A stretch of 64,000 nt of DNA from Pseudomonas aeruginosa PAO1 (GTDB lineage Bacteria > Pseudomonadota > Gammaproteobacteria > Pseudomonadales > Pseudomonadaceae), in assembly GCF_000006765.1 (NCBI RefSeq), contig NC_002516.2; one strand, written 5' to 3'. The notes under the pieces are model-generated. The model was not told the DNA's origin. It saw only the letters and a list, made by a program, of their open reading frames with translations, and did not search any database. Made by a program: the position numbers and the translations under genes. This document shows positions 13,924 through 56,180 of this stretch, one piece after another (the first letter of the stretch is position 1; each line of letters opens with the position of its first letter).

Positions 13924-15339
13924 TCAACGGGTGCGTGGGCCAATGAAGCGACTCTTCGCTTCTTTATGGATGCTCGGGTCGTCGGCCGACTCGATGGTGA
14001 AGACGATCTCGTTGGTGGTCGAAGGCAGCTTCTCCGGCTCGATGGACAGTTCCATCGGCAGGTTGAGGATGTCGCCCGCCGCCACCTTCAGCTCGCGCCG
14101 GCCTTCCAGGGTCAGGCCTTCGAGGCCCTTGGCGCCGAGGATGTAGGTGTGGTCCTGCTGATCCTTGTTCATGATCTTCAGGCTGTACACGTTCTCGATG
14201 CGGCCGAGTTCGTTCTCGCGGTAGAGCACGCGGTCCTTGCTGACGTCGAAGCCGACCAGCGGGCGCAGGACCACCGCGGTGATCAGGGCGGAGATCATCA
14301 GCACCAGGGCGATGGCGTAGCCGATCAGGCGCGGCCGGGCCAGGTGGGTCTTCTGGCCGTTGAGGTTGTGCTCGGTGGTGTAGCTGATCAGCCCTTTCGG
14401 GTAGTTCATCTTCTCCATGATGCTGTCGCAGGCGTCGATGCACGCCGCGCAGCCGATGCACTCGATCTGCAGGCCGTCGCGGATGTCGATGCCGGTCGGG
14501 CAGACCTGCACGCACATCGTGCAGTCGATGCAGTCGCCCAGGCCCTGGGCCTTGTAGTCGAGGGACTTCTTGCGCGGGCCGCGCTTCTCGCCACGACGCG
14601 GATCGTAGGAGACGATCAGGGTGTCCTTGTCGAACATCACGCTCTGGAAGCGCGCGTAGGGGCACATGTAGATGCACACCTGCTCGCGCAGCCAGCCGGC
14701 GTTGCCGTAGGTGGCCAGGGTGAAGAAGCCGACCCAGAAGTAGGCCCAGCCGTCGGCCTGGCCGGTGAGCAGCTCGGGAATCAGCTCGCGGATCGGCGAG
14801 AAGTAGCCGACGAAGGTCAGGCCGGTGACCAGGCCGATCAGCAGCCACAGGCTGTGCTTGGCGGTCTTGCGCAGCAGCTTGTTGCCGCTCATCGGAGCCT
14901 TGTCCAGCTTGATGCGCTGGTTGCGGTCGCCTTCGGTGACCTTCTCGCACCACATGTAGATCCAGGTCCACACGCTCTGCGGGCAGGTATAGCCACACCA
15001 GACGCGACCGGCGAACACGGTGATGAAGAACAGGCCGAAGGCGCAGACGATCAGCAGCCAGGACAGCAGCATGAAGTCCTGCGGCCAGAAGGTGGCGCCG
15101 AAGATGTAGAACTTGCGCTCGGGTAGGTCCCACCAGACGGCCTGGCGGCCGCTCCAGTTGAGCCAGACGGTACCGAAGTAGAGGAGGAAGAGCGCCGCAC
15201 CGCCCACCATGCGCAGTCGGCGGAAGATACCGGTGAAGGCCCGGGTGTAGATCTTCTCGCGCTTGGCGTAGAGATCGTTGTTATTGGTGTCGCCCTTGGC
15301 AGGCGGGGTGACGTCTTGAACGGGAATCTGTTTGCTCAT
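13924..15339 (-). CDS. ccoG: cbb3 oxidase accessory 4Fe-4S protein CcoG/FixG
   Basis: GRVWCGYTCPQ, CIYMCPY, CIDCTMCVQVCP and CIGCAACIDAC motifs. Confidence 0.95.
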   Translation of the reverse strand: MSKQIPVQDVTPPAKGDTNNNDLYAKREKIYTRAFTGIFRRLRMVGGAALFLLYFGTVWLNWSGRQAVWWDLPERKFYIFGATFWPQDFMLLSWLLIVCAFGLFFITVFAGRVWCGYTCPQSVWTWIYMWCEKVTEGDRNQRIKLDKAPMSGNKLLRKTAKHSLWLLIGLVTGLTFVGYFSPIRELIPELLTGQADGWAYFWVGFFTLATYGNAGWLREQVCIYMCPYARFQSVMFDKDTLIVSYDPRRGEKRGPRKKSLDYKAQGLGDCIDCTMCVQVCPTGIDIRDGLQIECIGCAACIDACDSIMEKMNYPKGLISYTTEHNLNGQKTHLARPRLIGYAIALVLMISALITAVVLRPLVGFDVSKDRVLYRENELGRIENVYSLKIMNKDQQDHTYILGAKGLEGLTLEGRRELKVAAGDILNLPMELSIEPEKLPSTTNEIVFTIESADDPSIHKEAKSRFIGPRTR

Positions 15340-15454
15340 CAGTGCGTACCACGGCAGTGGGGGGCGCCCGGCCGGTACATGCCGACAGGGTCAGAAAATA
15401 GTTGCACGCCTACTGATTATACGCCTGATCTATCAGGCTTTTTGCGGTAACTGT

Positions 15455-37568: not shown

Positions 37569-38450
37569 ATGTCGGTATCCCATGCGCAGTTGAAGGCTTT
37601 CCATGCAGTCGCCGTGTACGGCAGCTTCACGCGCGCCGCCGAGCGCCTGTTTCTCACCCAGCCGGCGGTTTCCGACCAGGTGCGCAAGCTGGAGGAGCGT
37701 TACGGCGTGCTGCTGTTCCACCGTAACAAGCGCTCGGTGCGCCTGAGCGAACTGGGCGAGCGCCTGCTCGCGGTGACCCAGCGGCTGTTCGCGATCGAGG
37801 CCGAGGCGGAGGAGCTGTTGTCCGCCTCCAGCGCCCTGCAGACCGGCACCCTGACCCTGGCGGTGGATGCGCCGGTGCATGTATTGCCGCAGATCGCGCG
37901 TTTCTGCGAGCGCTATCCGGGCATCGCGGTGCGGGTGGAGACCGGCAATACCGACGAGTCTCTGCAGCGACTGTTCAGCTACCAGGCCGACCTGGCCCTG
38001 TTGGGCCGGGACGTCAGCGACGAGCGGTTGCTTTCGCTGACCCTGCGCAACGACCCGATCGTCGCTTTCGTTTCGCTCAGCCATCCGTGGGCCGGGCGCG
38101 AGTCGATCCGGCTCGCCGATCTCGACGACATGCCGCTGGTGCTGCGCGAGCAGGGCTCGGTGACCCGCCAGACCCTGGAGGAGGAGATGAGCCGCGCCGG
38201 CCTGCGGATCTGTCCGGCGATCCAGGTCGAGGGCCGCGAGGCCTCGCGCGAGGCGGTGGTGGCGGGGATCGGCGTGGGGGTGGTGTCGGCCGCGGAGTTC
38301 GGCGCCGACACGCGGGTCCATGCGCTACCCATCGTCGATTGCCAGCGACGCCTGACCGAGACCCTGGTGTGCCTGCGCGAACAGCGTTCGCGGCGGATCG
38401 TCGAGACCTTCCTCGACCTGGTCGGCGAGGACCTGCCGGCGCCGAGCTAG
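37569..38450 (+). CDS. LysR-family regulator (phosphonate-catabolism-associated type)
   Basis: QLKAFHAVAVYGSFTRAAERLFLTQPAVSDQVRKLEERYG. Confidence 0.9.
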   Translation: MSVSHAQLKAFHAVAVYGSFTRAAERLFLTQPAVSDQVRKLEERYGVLLFHRNKRSVRLSELGERLLAVTQRLFAIEAEAEELLSASSALQTGTLTLAVDAPVHVLPQIARFCERYPGIAVRVETGNTDESLQRLFSYQADLALLGRDVSDERLLSLTLRNDPIVAFVSLSHPWAGRESIRLADLDDMPLVLREQGSVTRQTLEEEMSRAGLRICPAIQVEGREASREAVVAGIGVGVVSAAEFGADTRVHALPIVDCQRRLTETLVCLREQRSRRIVETFLDLVGEDLPAPS

Positions 38451-38470: not shown

Positions 38471-38497
38471 AAAAAAAGCCCGGCGGATGCCGGGCTT
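38471..38497. terminator. Terminator between convergent LysR and the 59-aa gene
   Basis: AAGCCCGGC-GGAT-GCCGGGCTT with an A7 run on the left (U tract for the minus strand). Confidence 0.8.
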
Positions 38498-38518
38498 CGA
38501 AGTCGTGCTGGCGGGCGC

Positions 38519-38698
38519 TCAGGCCTGCTTCTGTTCCTGCTCCAGGGACCTGTCCAGTTCGCGGCAGGCGCGCTGGATCATCACCTCGGTGATCGGGATC
38601 TCCCGGCCCTGGGCGTCGATGATGGCGCCACCGGTGTGCTGCTGCGTATTGAAGGGGATCACGCGGCGCTTGGCGGTATCGGTGTGTTGCGAATTCAT
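38519..38698 (-). CDS. Small hypothetical protein (59 aa)
   Basis: MNSQHTDTAKRRVIPF...GGAIIDAQGREIPITEVMIQRAC; GAGGAG RBS; own terminator. Confidence 0.8.
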   Translation of the reverse strand: MNSQHTDTAKRRVIPFNTQQHTGGAIIDAQGREIPITEVMIQRACRELDRSLEQEQKQA

Positions 38699-38907
38699 TG
38701 CCCGTCTCCTCATCAGGTTTATCGGCAGTCTAGGGAGCGCAGATGAAACCGCCGTGACAAACGGCGGATGTCGTGCCGCTCCAACGCGAAAGCCATGGAC
38801 CATAGCAATCTTGCAGTCGGCGTGCCAGCTTGCCGGCTACCGCTGGGTTTTTCTGGTTATAGTGGTCCGACCGGTGTGGGCGTCCTGGAGTTCGCCCGAG
38901 GATGAGT

Positions 38908-40053
38908 ATGGACATGTTTCGCCTGGGGTTGGTGGTCAATCCCCTGGCCGGGCTGGGTGGCCCGGTCGCCTTGAAGGGTAGCGATGGGGTGGCCGCCGAG
39001 GCCCTGGCCAGAGGCGCCGAACCACGTGCGCTGGAGCGCACCCGGATAGCCGTGGAGTGCCTGTTGCCGCTGGTCGAGAAGATCGAGTTCCTGACCTTTC
39101 CCGGGGCCATGGGTGGTGAGTTGCTCGAGCGCATGGGCTTCCGCCATCGCCTGCTCGGCGAGTGGCAGGGAGCGGTCAGCAGCGCGGCGGATACCCGGTT
39201 GGCGATCGAGCGTTTGCAGGAGGCCGGTGTCGCCCTGATCCTGTTCGCCGGTGGTGATGGCACAGCACGGGATGTTGCCGGGGTGGTGCGCGAGCAACAG
39301 CCGGTGCTCGGCATTCCGGCCGGGGTGAAGATCCACTCCGGGGTCTATGCCATCAGTCCGCGCGCGGCCGGCGAATTGGCCAGGCGCCTGGTCGAGGGCG
39401 GCCTGGTGCGCCTGGCCAGCGGCGAGGTGCGCGACCTCGACGAAGAGGCGCTGCGCGCCGGCCGCGTCGCCGCGCGTTGGTACGGCGAGATGACAGTGCC
39501 GGAGGAGGGCCACTTCATGCAGCACGTGAAGCAGGCAGGGATGGAGTCCGAGGAGCTGGTGCTGGTGGACCTCGCCGACTGGCTGGCGGAAAACTGGGAA
39601 GACGGCGTGCGCTATGTGCTCGGACCGGGCTCGACCTTGCATGGCCTGGCGCGCAACCTCGGCCTGGAAACCACCCTGCTGGGCGTCGACGTGCTGGAGA
39701 ATGGCGCGGTGATTGCCCGCGACGTCGACGAGGCGCGGCTGTTCGAACTGGTGGACGGTCATCCGGCGTACCTGCTGGTCACCGCCATCGGCGGCCAGGG
39801 CCACGTGATCGGTCGCGGCAACCAGCAGATCAGTCCCCGGGTGTTGCGCGCCATCGGCCTGGAGCGCATGCGGGTGGTCGCCACCAAGCGCAAGCTGGGG
39901 ACCCTCGGGGGCCGCCCGTTGCTGGTCGACAGCGGCGACCCGGTGCTGGACGACAGCTTCCCGGACACCATCCGGGTCTGGGCCGGCTACAAGGAAGAAC
40001 TGCTGTATCCGCTGGGATACGCGAAGGACCAGGACGCGCCCGCGGGCGCTTAG
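38908..40053 (+). CDS. ATP-NAD kinase / AcoX-like protein
   Basis: VNPLAG, GGDGT and PVLGIPAGVK; start at 38908 chosen for the GAGG RBS. Confidence 0.8.
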   Translation: MDMFRLGLVVNPLAGLGGPVALKGSDGVAAEALARGAEPRALERTRIAVECLLPLVEKIEFLTFPGAMGGELLERMGFRHRLLGEWQGAVSSAADTRLAIERLQEAGVALILFAGGDGTARDVAGVVREQQPVLGIPAGVKIHSGVYAISPRAAGELARRLVEGGLVRLASGEVRDLDEEALRAGRVAARWYGEMTVPEEGHFMQHVKQAGMESEELVLVDLADWLAENWEDGVRYVLGPGSTLHGLARNLGLETTLLGVDVLENGAVIARDVDEARLFELVDGHPAYLLVTAIGGQGHVIGRGNQQISPRVLRAIGLERMRVVATKRKLGTLGGRPLLVDSGDPVLDDSFPDTIRVWAGYKEELLYPLGYAKDQDAPAGA

Positions 40054-46743: not shown

Positions 46744-47130
46744 GTGAAAAAAGCCGTGAATAGCAAACGACCTGTAAACCTAGACCTAAGGACCATCAAA
46801 CTCCCTGTCACCGCTTACACGTCCATTCTCCACCGTATCTCTGGCGTCATCCTGTTCCTCGGTATTGCCGTGCTGCTGTTCGCGCTCGACAAGTCGCTGA
46901 GTTCGGAAGAAGGCTTCGAGCAGGTGAAGGCGTGCCTGACCAGTCCCCTGGCCAAGCTGGTGATCTGGGGCCTGCTGTCTGCGCTGCTGTACCACCTGGT
47001 GGCCGGTGTTCGCCACCTGGTCATGGACGCTGGCGTCGGCGAGACGCTGGAAGGCGGTAAGCGTGGCTCCAAAATCGTCATCGCCATCGCGGTGGTGCTG
47101 ATCGTTCTGGCGGGGGTATGGGTATGGTAA
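46744..47130 (+). CDS. sdhC: Succinate dehydrogenase cytochrome b556 subunit
   Basis: RPVNLDL, SILHRISG and HLVAGVRHL; GTG start. Confidence 0.95.
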   Translation: MKKAVNSKRPVNLDLRTIKLPVTAYTSILHRISGVILFLGIAVLLFALDKSLSSEEGFEQVKACLTSPLAKLVIWGLLSALLYHLVAGVRHLVMDAGVGETLEGGKRGSKIVIAIAVVLIVLAGVWVW

Positions 47131-50019: not shown

Positions 50020-50243
50020 GCAACACCTGTGGCGCCGGAGTTCTTCCGGCGTCGCAGCAACTAAGCGGGCCAAGCTCACAAAGCCATGGCCCAGATTTGA
50101 AAAATATGACCAGCAGGGGCATCCGGGCTGGTACCCGGACTATCTGCGGGATCTGTAGTGGCCATACCGATGTCGCTGCCTGAGGACTTCGGAGCCTTCA
50201 AGGTTTCGCCAGGTGGTTGTCCCCTTACCGAGGGTGACCTAGC
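50020..50243 (+). ncRNA. Structured sucA 5' leader (candidate sucA-II motif)
   Basis: Hairpins such as TGTGGCGCCGGAG-TTC-TTCCGGCGTCGCA and TCCGGG-CTGGTA-CCCGGA; a Pseudomonas sucA-II motif is recalled for this position; boundaries approximate. Confidence 0.5.
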
Positions 50244-55959: not shown

Positions 55960-56180
55960 TCCACGGTTTGCCGCCTGCGTCGGGATGCCGCAGGCGGCAG
56001 ACTTTCAGAAGAACCACGGCGGGTGAGCGCCGGCGACCGTTGCGAGGTGGCCGCGGGCGTATGCCGCCGGACTGTTTTTTCGCGAGCCGGGTGGTTCGCG
56101 AAACGACGGTCACAGGTGGTGGGGCGCCACGAGCGCTCCGCCGAAATGCGCAATACCTAGACGAATAACGGTAGACAAGC
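55960..56180 (+). ncRNA. Structured sucC 5' leader (candidate sucC motif)
   Basis: Strong hairpin TGCCGCCTGCG-N9-CGCAGGCGGCA plus further stems before the sucC start; a Pseudomonas sucC motif is recalled; boundaries approximate. Confidence 0.45.

Follow-up and report, generated by a model that had tools for sequence, protein, structure and literature searches.

The small RNA RyhB of Escherichia coli is Fur-repressed and Hfq-dependent; at targets such as sodB it blocks the start of translation and triggers decay of the mRNA, and the target is therefore on when iron is sufficient. In Pseudomonas aeruginosa, both iron homeostasis and virulence require PrrF, whose set of direct targets is still being worked out. 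The tandem arrangement of the prrF genes, which allows a read-through RNA (PrrH), is usually described as specific to this species. PrrF1 and PrrF2 repress sodB, katA, brnD (PA4880) and sdhC, and it is the same sRNA, through the same conserved core, that would act on the locus described here. This locus, PA1571, lies in a 64-kb stretch of PAO1 DNA that was analysed as a whole (hereafter the window). Its ribosome-binding site is complementary to the PrrF core, and we put at roughly three in four the probability that PA1571 mRNA is a direct, conserved target of PrrF1 and PrrF2 (and of the read-through PrrH), repressed via blocked translation and mRNA decay. The small-protein gene itself is real and conserved. 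The regulatory circuit is well known, and what is new to the PrrF regulon is PA1571.

PA1571 and its complementarity to PrrF

The arrangement of the locus, together with other features of the window that are discussed below, is given in Table 1.

Table 1. Features of the PA1571 locus and other elements of the window. Positions are those of the window; signed distances are relative to the start codon of the gene concerned.
Feature	Position	Strand	Remarks
471-aa ORF	starts at 15339	-	FixG/CcoG-like 4Fe-4S protein (Pfam Fer4_18, FixG_C)
Second-best predicted PrrF site (GCCGUGGUACGCACUGAUGAGC)	~15335-15360	-	spans start codon of the 471-aa ORF (from -17 across the start codon)
LysR-type regulator gene	37569-38450	+	convergent, downstream of PA1571
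Intrinsic terminator	38475-38498	-	20 nt past PA1571 stop; shared back-to-back with the convergent LysR gene
PA1571 CDS	38519-38698	-	59 aa plus stop; ATG 38698-38696; conserved small protein
PrrF-core complement, 13 nt exact (CCUGAUGAGGAGA)	38705-38717	-	-19 to -7 of the PA1571 mRNA
Shine-Dalgarno (SD) GAGGAG	38706-38711	-	-13 to -8, wholly inside the predicted duplex
AUG within the PrrF site (CCUG-AUG-AGGAGA)	38711-38713	-
Pairing extension GAUAAA	38718-38723	-	4 of 6 further pairs; duplex reaches -25
-10-like hexamer TAGACT	38727-38732	-	preceded by C (CTAGACT); most Pseudomonas-type orthologues conserve it as cCTAGACTgc
Pho-box-like direct repeat TGTCAC-GGCGG-TTTCAT	38743-38759	-	10 nt upstream of the -10 hexamer
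Terminator-like hairpin (rejected)	38749-38767	-
NAD-kinase-like gene	38902-40053	+	divergent, upstream of PA1571
sdhC codons 3-8 (AAAGCCGUGAAUAGCA)	~46750-46765	+	predicted PrrF pairing, +6 to +21
Rfam sucA-II cis-regulatory RNA motif	50027-50240	+	171 bits; upstream of 2-oxoglutarate dehydrogenase genes
Rfam sucC cis-regulatory RNA motif	56109-56179	+	75 bits; upstream of succinyl-CoA synthetase genes

The NCBIfam equivalog model NF045613 ('PA1571 family protein'), with a cut-off of 35 bits, recognises PA1571 at 78.1 bits (E = 3.9e-22), and the family numbers 599 representatives at 50% identity. Across 39 diverse family sequences 11 columns are invariant, and the invariant or near-invariant core reads GGAIIDAQGREIPITExMIQRAC. 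A preliminary description of this DNA had noted a single Cys, no evident iron motif and a short transcript with its own terminator, and all three observations stand. The Cys is C45, which is kept in at least 90% of homologues; a Pfam search with PA1571 found no domain and a search of the PDB for its fold found no match (best E 1.8); and the terminator would delimit a monocistronic RNA of ~250 nt. The AlphaFold2 model (mean pLDDT 75) consists of a disordered N-terminus, a β-hairpin at residues 25-35 and a C-terminal helix at residues 38-58. The family profile also matches four large NACHT/ankyrin/TPR proteins (P0117, P0139, P0227 and P0241), 7-16 times each. These extra matches concern residues 19-43 of PA1571 and fall in the 31-residue repeats of Pfam DUF7104, and thus the β-hairpin core of PA1571 resembles a DUF7104 repeat. 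PA1571 itself falls short of the Pfam DUF7104 model.

The PrrF seed given in the preliminary description proved to be correct, agreeing with the Rfam RF00444 consensus, with at least 92 Pseudomonas prrF loci and with published PAO1 primers. The consensus is GAUUAUCUCCUCAUCAGGCUAAUCACGG; it is mostly unpaired, containing a 3-bp hairpin only, and lies between stem-loop 2 and the terminator. PrrF loci were sought by scanning one genome per species for TCTCCTCATCAGGNNNATC, which returned at least 120 loci. Among those listed, 92, all from the Pseudomonas family, share the 19-mer TCTCCTCATCAGGCTAATC without change and were identified by Rfam as PrrF (RF00444, 92-160 bits); each of them has a Fur-box-like AT-rich promoter before it and ACGG...GACCCGGC...GCCGGGTCTTTTTTT after it. 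The matches listed from this one-genome-per-species scan include no occurrence of the 19-mer outside Pseudomonas-family genomes. P. aeruginosa is itself absent among the matches listed, and PAO1 PrrF was checked via the published primers (PMC2851614): PrrF.RACE2 (AAAACCGTGATTAGCCTGATGAGGAG) yields CTCCTCATCAGGCTAATCACGGTTTT for P. aeruginosa itself, covering 12 of the 13 paired bases with the 13th taken from the family consensus, and the PAO1 PrrF terminator is GACCCGGCACTTTGCCGGG. Tandem prrF pairs with seeds 223 nt apart were also observed in Pseudomonas sp. 21 (L064, 3236-3609, minus strand) and in an uncultured Pseudomonas MAG (L003, 5624-5997, plus strand), and the terminator of these genes matches the PAO1 primer sequence.

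In the mRNA sense (minus strand) the PA1571 leader reads ...CCCTAGACTGCCGATAAACCTGATGAGGAGACGGGCAATG (or ...GCCGAUAAACCUGAUGAGGAGACGGGCAAUG, with the ATG at 38698-38696). The invariant PrrF core UCUCCUCAUCAGG can pair with this leader over 13 contiguous nucleotides, all of them Watson-Crick pairs, and the duplex covers the whole of the SD, both as originally claimed. The longer match of 17 pairs in 19 that had been claimed alongside holds in P. aeruginosa (two mismatches across 38705-38723), whilst the four additional pairs are not conserved. The SD itself supplies six of the 13 paired bases, and these would be conserved in any case. On both strands of the window this is the sole complement of at least 11 nt to the 32-nt PrrF core, the next best being a 10-mer. 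An exact or one-mismatch 13-mer is expected 0.11 times per window and a 19-mer with up to three mismatches 0.00 times (0 in 100 dinucleotide-preserving shuffles).

The predicted strength of pairing was scored at the 195 ORF start regions of the window as the sum of the hybridisation energy and the opening energy of both partners, windowed, with the PrrF of Pseudomonas sp. 21 as a stand-in for that of PAO1. PA1571 ranked first of the 195 (mean -3.0, sd 3.3 kcal/mol), reaching -17.1 kcal/mol with its short 5′ UTR (-25 to -7) and -15.3 kcal/mol in a -60 to +60 context (-19 to -7). The site had been said to be stronger than those at sdhC, gltA and acnA, and the scores bear this out: sdhC reached -14.0 kcal/mol, gltA -3.9 kcal/mol (from -44), and no acnA-sized ORF start was among the 12 best of the 195. 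Plain RNAduplex energies without accessibility separated the top region (-30.5) little from the next (-28), and the full-length sRNA gave hybrids of unrealistic length; such energies discriminate poorly and therefore the score that includes opening energies was used instead. The second-best region was the start of the 471-aa ORF (-15.1 kcal/mol), which, going by PAO1 gene order, we take to be PA1551. If so, its mRNA is iron-induced (+7.3 in WT-comp) in the RNA-seq data of PMC10597452. In PrrF, the segment that pairs with sdhC is the 3′ portion of the core (GCUAAUCACGGUUU), and this agrees with the PrrF-sdhC complementarity reported from CopraRNA (bioRxiv 10.1101/477984).

Response of PA1571 to iron and prrF

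Expression data were taken from Hoang et al. 2023 (PMC10597452, Data Set S1), where PAO1 was grown in M9 medium at two iron levels, 50 nM and 100 µM FeCl3. The RNA-seq fold-change columns are headed 'Low Fe/High Fe', and their signs were read as high over low iron from the values of bfrB (+28), katA (+5.9), femI (-115) and fepC (-15). Read in this way, PA1571 mRNA rises with iron by +4.89 in WT/vector (FDR 1.8e-7), by +2.13 in ΔprrF/vector (6e-8) and by +5.97 in ΔprrF/WT-comp (1.8e-13), the last being ΔprrF with the prrF locus on a plasmid. The response in ΔprrF resembles that of katA, a validated direct PrrF target (+5.93 in WT/vector, +2.18 in ΔprrF/vector); bfrB, which is PrrF-independent, gave +28 and +43 in the same two strains. 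From the ΔprrF and complement figures, the prrF locus accounts for about half of the fivefold iron induction. A PrrF-independent twofold iron effect remains in ΔprrF, and since the deletion removes only about half of the response, another iron-responsive input exists. Part of the PrrF effect on PA1571 could also be indirect.

PA1571 was quantified in the PAO1 proteomics of the same study, and therefore the protein is made. Moreover, its level in the 'short-comp' strain, in which prrF2 is rearranged and there is less PrrF2, was raised 2.18-fold (adjusted p = 7e-9). One of the two proposals put forward from the sequence, that of an unrecognised iron-regulated small protein under PrrF, is thus supported by the conserved complementarity, by prrF-dependent iron induction and by proteomic detection. 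In the literature searched, PA1571 and PrrF are not named together, and PA1571 is not listed in the Hfq CLIP supplements.

The sequence of events we favour is as follows. When iron is scarce, Fur would release prrF, and the single-stranded PrrF core would pair, assisted by Hfq, with positions -19 to -7 of the very short PA1571 leader. The resulting duplex over the SD would keep the 30S subunit off, and the untranslated PA1571 mRNA would be degraded. When iron is plentiful, PrrF would be gone and PA1571 would be made. Here we infer direct pairing, dependence on Hfq, a translational block as the primary event and the order of the steps. PA1571 is without an evident iron-binding motif, so the usual iron-sparing rationale for such repression is not evident.

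Promoter and leader of PA1571 in related bacteria

The -10-like hexamer would place the transcription start of PA1571 near 38720, which would make the 5′ UTR ~22 nt long, nearly all of it PrrF site. In one P. aeruginosa metagenome contig (L122) the inferred -10 reads TAGAAT in place of TAGACT, nearer to consensus. All five P. aeruginosa contigs have the same PrrF site. Further upstream, two TGTCAY-like half-sites 11 bp apart replace the -35 element. The pattern TGTCAY-N5-NWTCAY precedes almost all family members; in 37 of 66 loci (L122-L199), those of Alcanivorax included (TGTCATAAAACGATCAC), it is placed at -59 to -65 relative to the ATG, and it occurs nowhere else in 516 kb. The PA1571 box resembles E. 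coli PhoB ChIP-seq sites in PMC10294691, for example those of phoA (TGTCATAAAGTTGTCACG) and phoB (TTTCATAAATCTGTCATA). Judged by this likeness, the repeat is probably a PhoB-type activator site, and it suggests that the PA1571 family may be induced by phosphate starvation. PA1571 is not listed in the supplements of PMC7082139. Two other readings of the region were rejected. The terminator-like hairpin is not conserved as a hairpin, being the P. aeruginosa form of the TGTCAC...TTCATC promoter element. Reading TGTCAC-N5-TTTCAT as a sigma-54 promoter fails because such promoters have near-invariant GG and GC dinucleotides, which are replaced in every orthologue of PA1571.

The candidate Pho box and the PrrF site together hint at a link between phosphate and iron signalling. 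In its fullest form, PA1571 would be a node between the two, with a PhoB-type promoter conserved from Alcanivorax to Pseudomonas, an unusually strong PrrF site gained in the PrrF-bearing lineage and an mRNA of dual function, both target and decoy. We regard this as doubtful. If true, the PA1571 protein would be made only when iron is sufficient, and a sudden rise of the transcript under phosphate limitation could titrate away PrrF, weakening the iron-sparing response.

The other proposal made from the sequence was that the mRNA acts as a PrrF sponge. The short PA1571 transcript would then mainly titrate PrrF, relieving the repression of sodB, katA, sdh and others: once the promoter fires, perhaps through PhoB when phosphate is low, PrrF would be absorbed by the long, perfect match to its seed. 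In its favour, the pairing with the PrrF seed is of unusual length and exactness and involves the core that also serves the other targets, the monocistronic transcript is short and ends in a strong terminator, and the conserved promoter element would allow separate regulation. Furthermore, an sRNA and its target are normally co-degraded, and any abundant strong target titrates to some degree. However, the ORF is strongly constrained as a protein, as the 11 invariant columns and the 599 representatives attest, and the protein is detected. Selection on the ORF as a protein means that the transcript is not merely a decoy RNA. Moreover, beyond the lineage that carries PrrF, homologues have retained both protein and promoter box and lack the site. 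We consider titration unlikely to be the main role of the transcript.

A metagenome scan with the PA1571 family alignment recovered 80 loci, with 52 distinct Pseudomonas-type leaders. The full 13-mer is present in 15 of the 52 and a run of at least 10 nt in 27, whilst the run is 7 nt or less in 18, among them that of Aquipseudomonas alcaligenes, where the upstream part of the motif is lost. None of 15 homologues of Alcanivorax, Alloalcanivorax or Agitococcus type has a run of 7 nt or more. On these leaders, the putative PrrF site is common, yet not universal, in Pseudomonadaceae. No PA1571 homologue names from the fluorescens, putida or syringae lineages are among the matches listed, and the gene is apparently missing there.

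The core that recurs in diverged Pseudomonas-lineage orthologues is CUGAUGAGGAGA(C). The proteins behind the conserved leaders are 47-65% identical to PA1571, and the sequence between promoter and motif is freely divergent. With the leaders aligned on the SD, the fraction matching PrrF in the columns C, C, U, G, A, U, G and A is 0.40, 0.70, 0.54, 0.86, 0.86, 0.62, 0.72 and 0.98, respectively, followed by 1.0 in each column of GGAG (present in 50 of 50 Pseudomonas-type leaders) and 0.88 for the following A. The six columns upstream of the 13-mer match PrrF at 0.10-0.48, which is the background frequency, and the extension to 17 of 19 is therefore a peculiarity of P. aeruginosa.

Several leaders retain complementarity in altered form. 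In L139 (CCUGAUG-ua-GAGGAGAU), L159 (GCCUGAUGAG-aaa-GGAGAC) and L136 (AGCC-GAUGAGGAGA) both complementary blocks are kept around an insertion or bulge, the block in L159 being shifted from the SD and still retained, and a marine Pseudomonas group (CCGAUGAGGAGAC) keeps the complementarity with changes. The AUG within the site is in frame in P. aeruginosa (MRRRA-MNSQ...) and in most orthologues, and some database entries of 83-94 aa begin further upstream than the PA1571 ATG. As an alternative start this AUG was rejected: it is 16 nt from the ATG in L132 and 14 nt in L141, out of frame in both, so the frame is not conserved. The longer ORFs are probably annotation artefacts.

Could the match be a coincidence? 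The motif might be kept as an SD with an enhancer, or for some other factor, and the effect of ΔprrF be indirect. GGAG is invariant as an SD, and the PrrF seed contains an anti-SD, so a partial match to strong SDs is to be expected; the motif is absent from some orthologues, and the residual twofold iron effect in ΔprrF shows that there are other inputs. Nevertheless, conservation reaches 6-7 nt upstream of the SD, with flanking columns at 0.3-0.6, and the insertion variants retain both complementary blocks. The 312 kb of family loci contain the 13-mer 18 times, in every case 5-7 nt ahead of the ATG, and neither those loci nor the window have it in any other place. Moreover, the response of the ΔprrF and complemented strains mirrors that of the direct target katA. 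Such a coincidence is improbable in our view.

Least of all do we expect the leader to be conserved for a structure in cis, in which UGAUGAGG would pair with CCAUCAUCG (the conserved A-I-I-D codons, ~+85) and hide the SD: the minimum-free-energy fold of the full mRNA does pair both segments (unpaired probability of the SD region 0.06-0.2) and 84% of alignment cells can pair, but no such helix is predicted by RNAalifold, the proportion of cells in which the pairs form (83.9%) is no better than that in column shuffles (82.8%) or after sliding by +3 columns (79.4%) and covariation is not in excess, the cis duplex is weak, at -4 to -13 kcal/mol where that with PrrF reaches -20 to -25, with an energy unrelated to the motif (~-4 in L149, L151 and L161, which have the full motif; -8.7 in L128, which has none), and both the upstream CC and the ΔprrF phenotype would be left unexplained. 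With support from neither RNAalifold nor the pair counts, anti-SD pairing with the AIID codons was rejected as the main explanation.

PA1571 beside known sRNA targets

As a direct target, PA1571 would rank among the best-matched and most conserved of those of PrrF. Its apparent absence from the fluorescens, putida and syringae lineages would make it drop out of comparative target predictions, and it has likely been overlooked because of its very small size, its lack of a name and its apparent absence from the species on which such predictions usually draw. Regulation by PrrF would give this uncharacterised small-protein family its first regulatory context, as a protein that is produced if iron suffices and that phosphate starvation may induce. 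The ~22-nt leader, nearly all of it pairing site, would also lend itself to a compact reporter of PrrF activity.

The locus has features in common with mRNA-derived or 5′-UTR sponges, such as the Salmonella 5′-UTR RNA that sponges MicF (to which PMC10214189 refers), in that the RNA has extended complementarity to an sRNA seed. A difference is that the PA1571 transcript encodes a conserved, expressed protein. Repression of PA1571 by PrrF would share the logic of RyhB, although PrrF and RyhB are not sequence homologues, and RyhB targets are mostly iron proteins whereas nothing marks PA1571 as one. A further likeness is with the PrrF regulon itself. The brnD pairing is reported to overlap the SD and start region (PMC13104616), and so does the predicted pairing at PA1571; as with katA, the mRNA is iron-induced and less so in ΔprrF. 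PA1571 differs from known PrrF targets in being 59 aa long and without a recognisable iron, heme or Fe-S motif. As with those targets, its complementarity is conserved in other pseudomonads, and the pairing is longer and more exact than that of sdhC in the same window.
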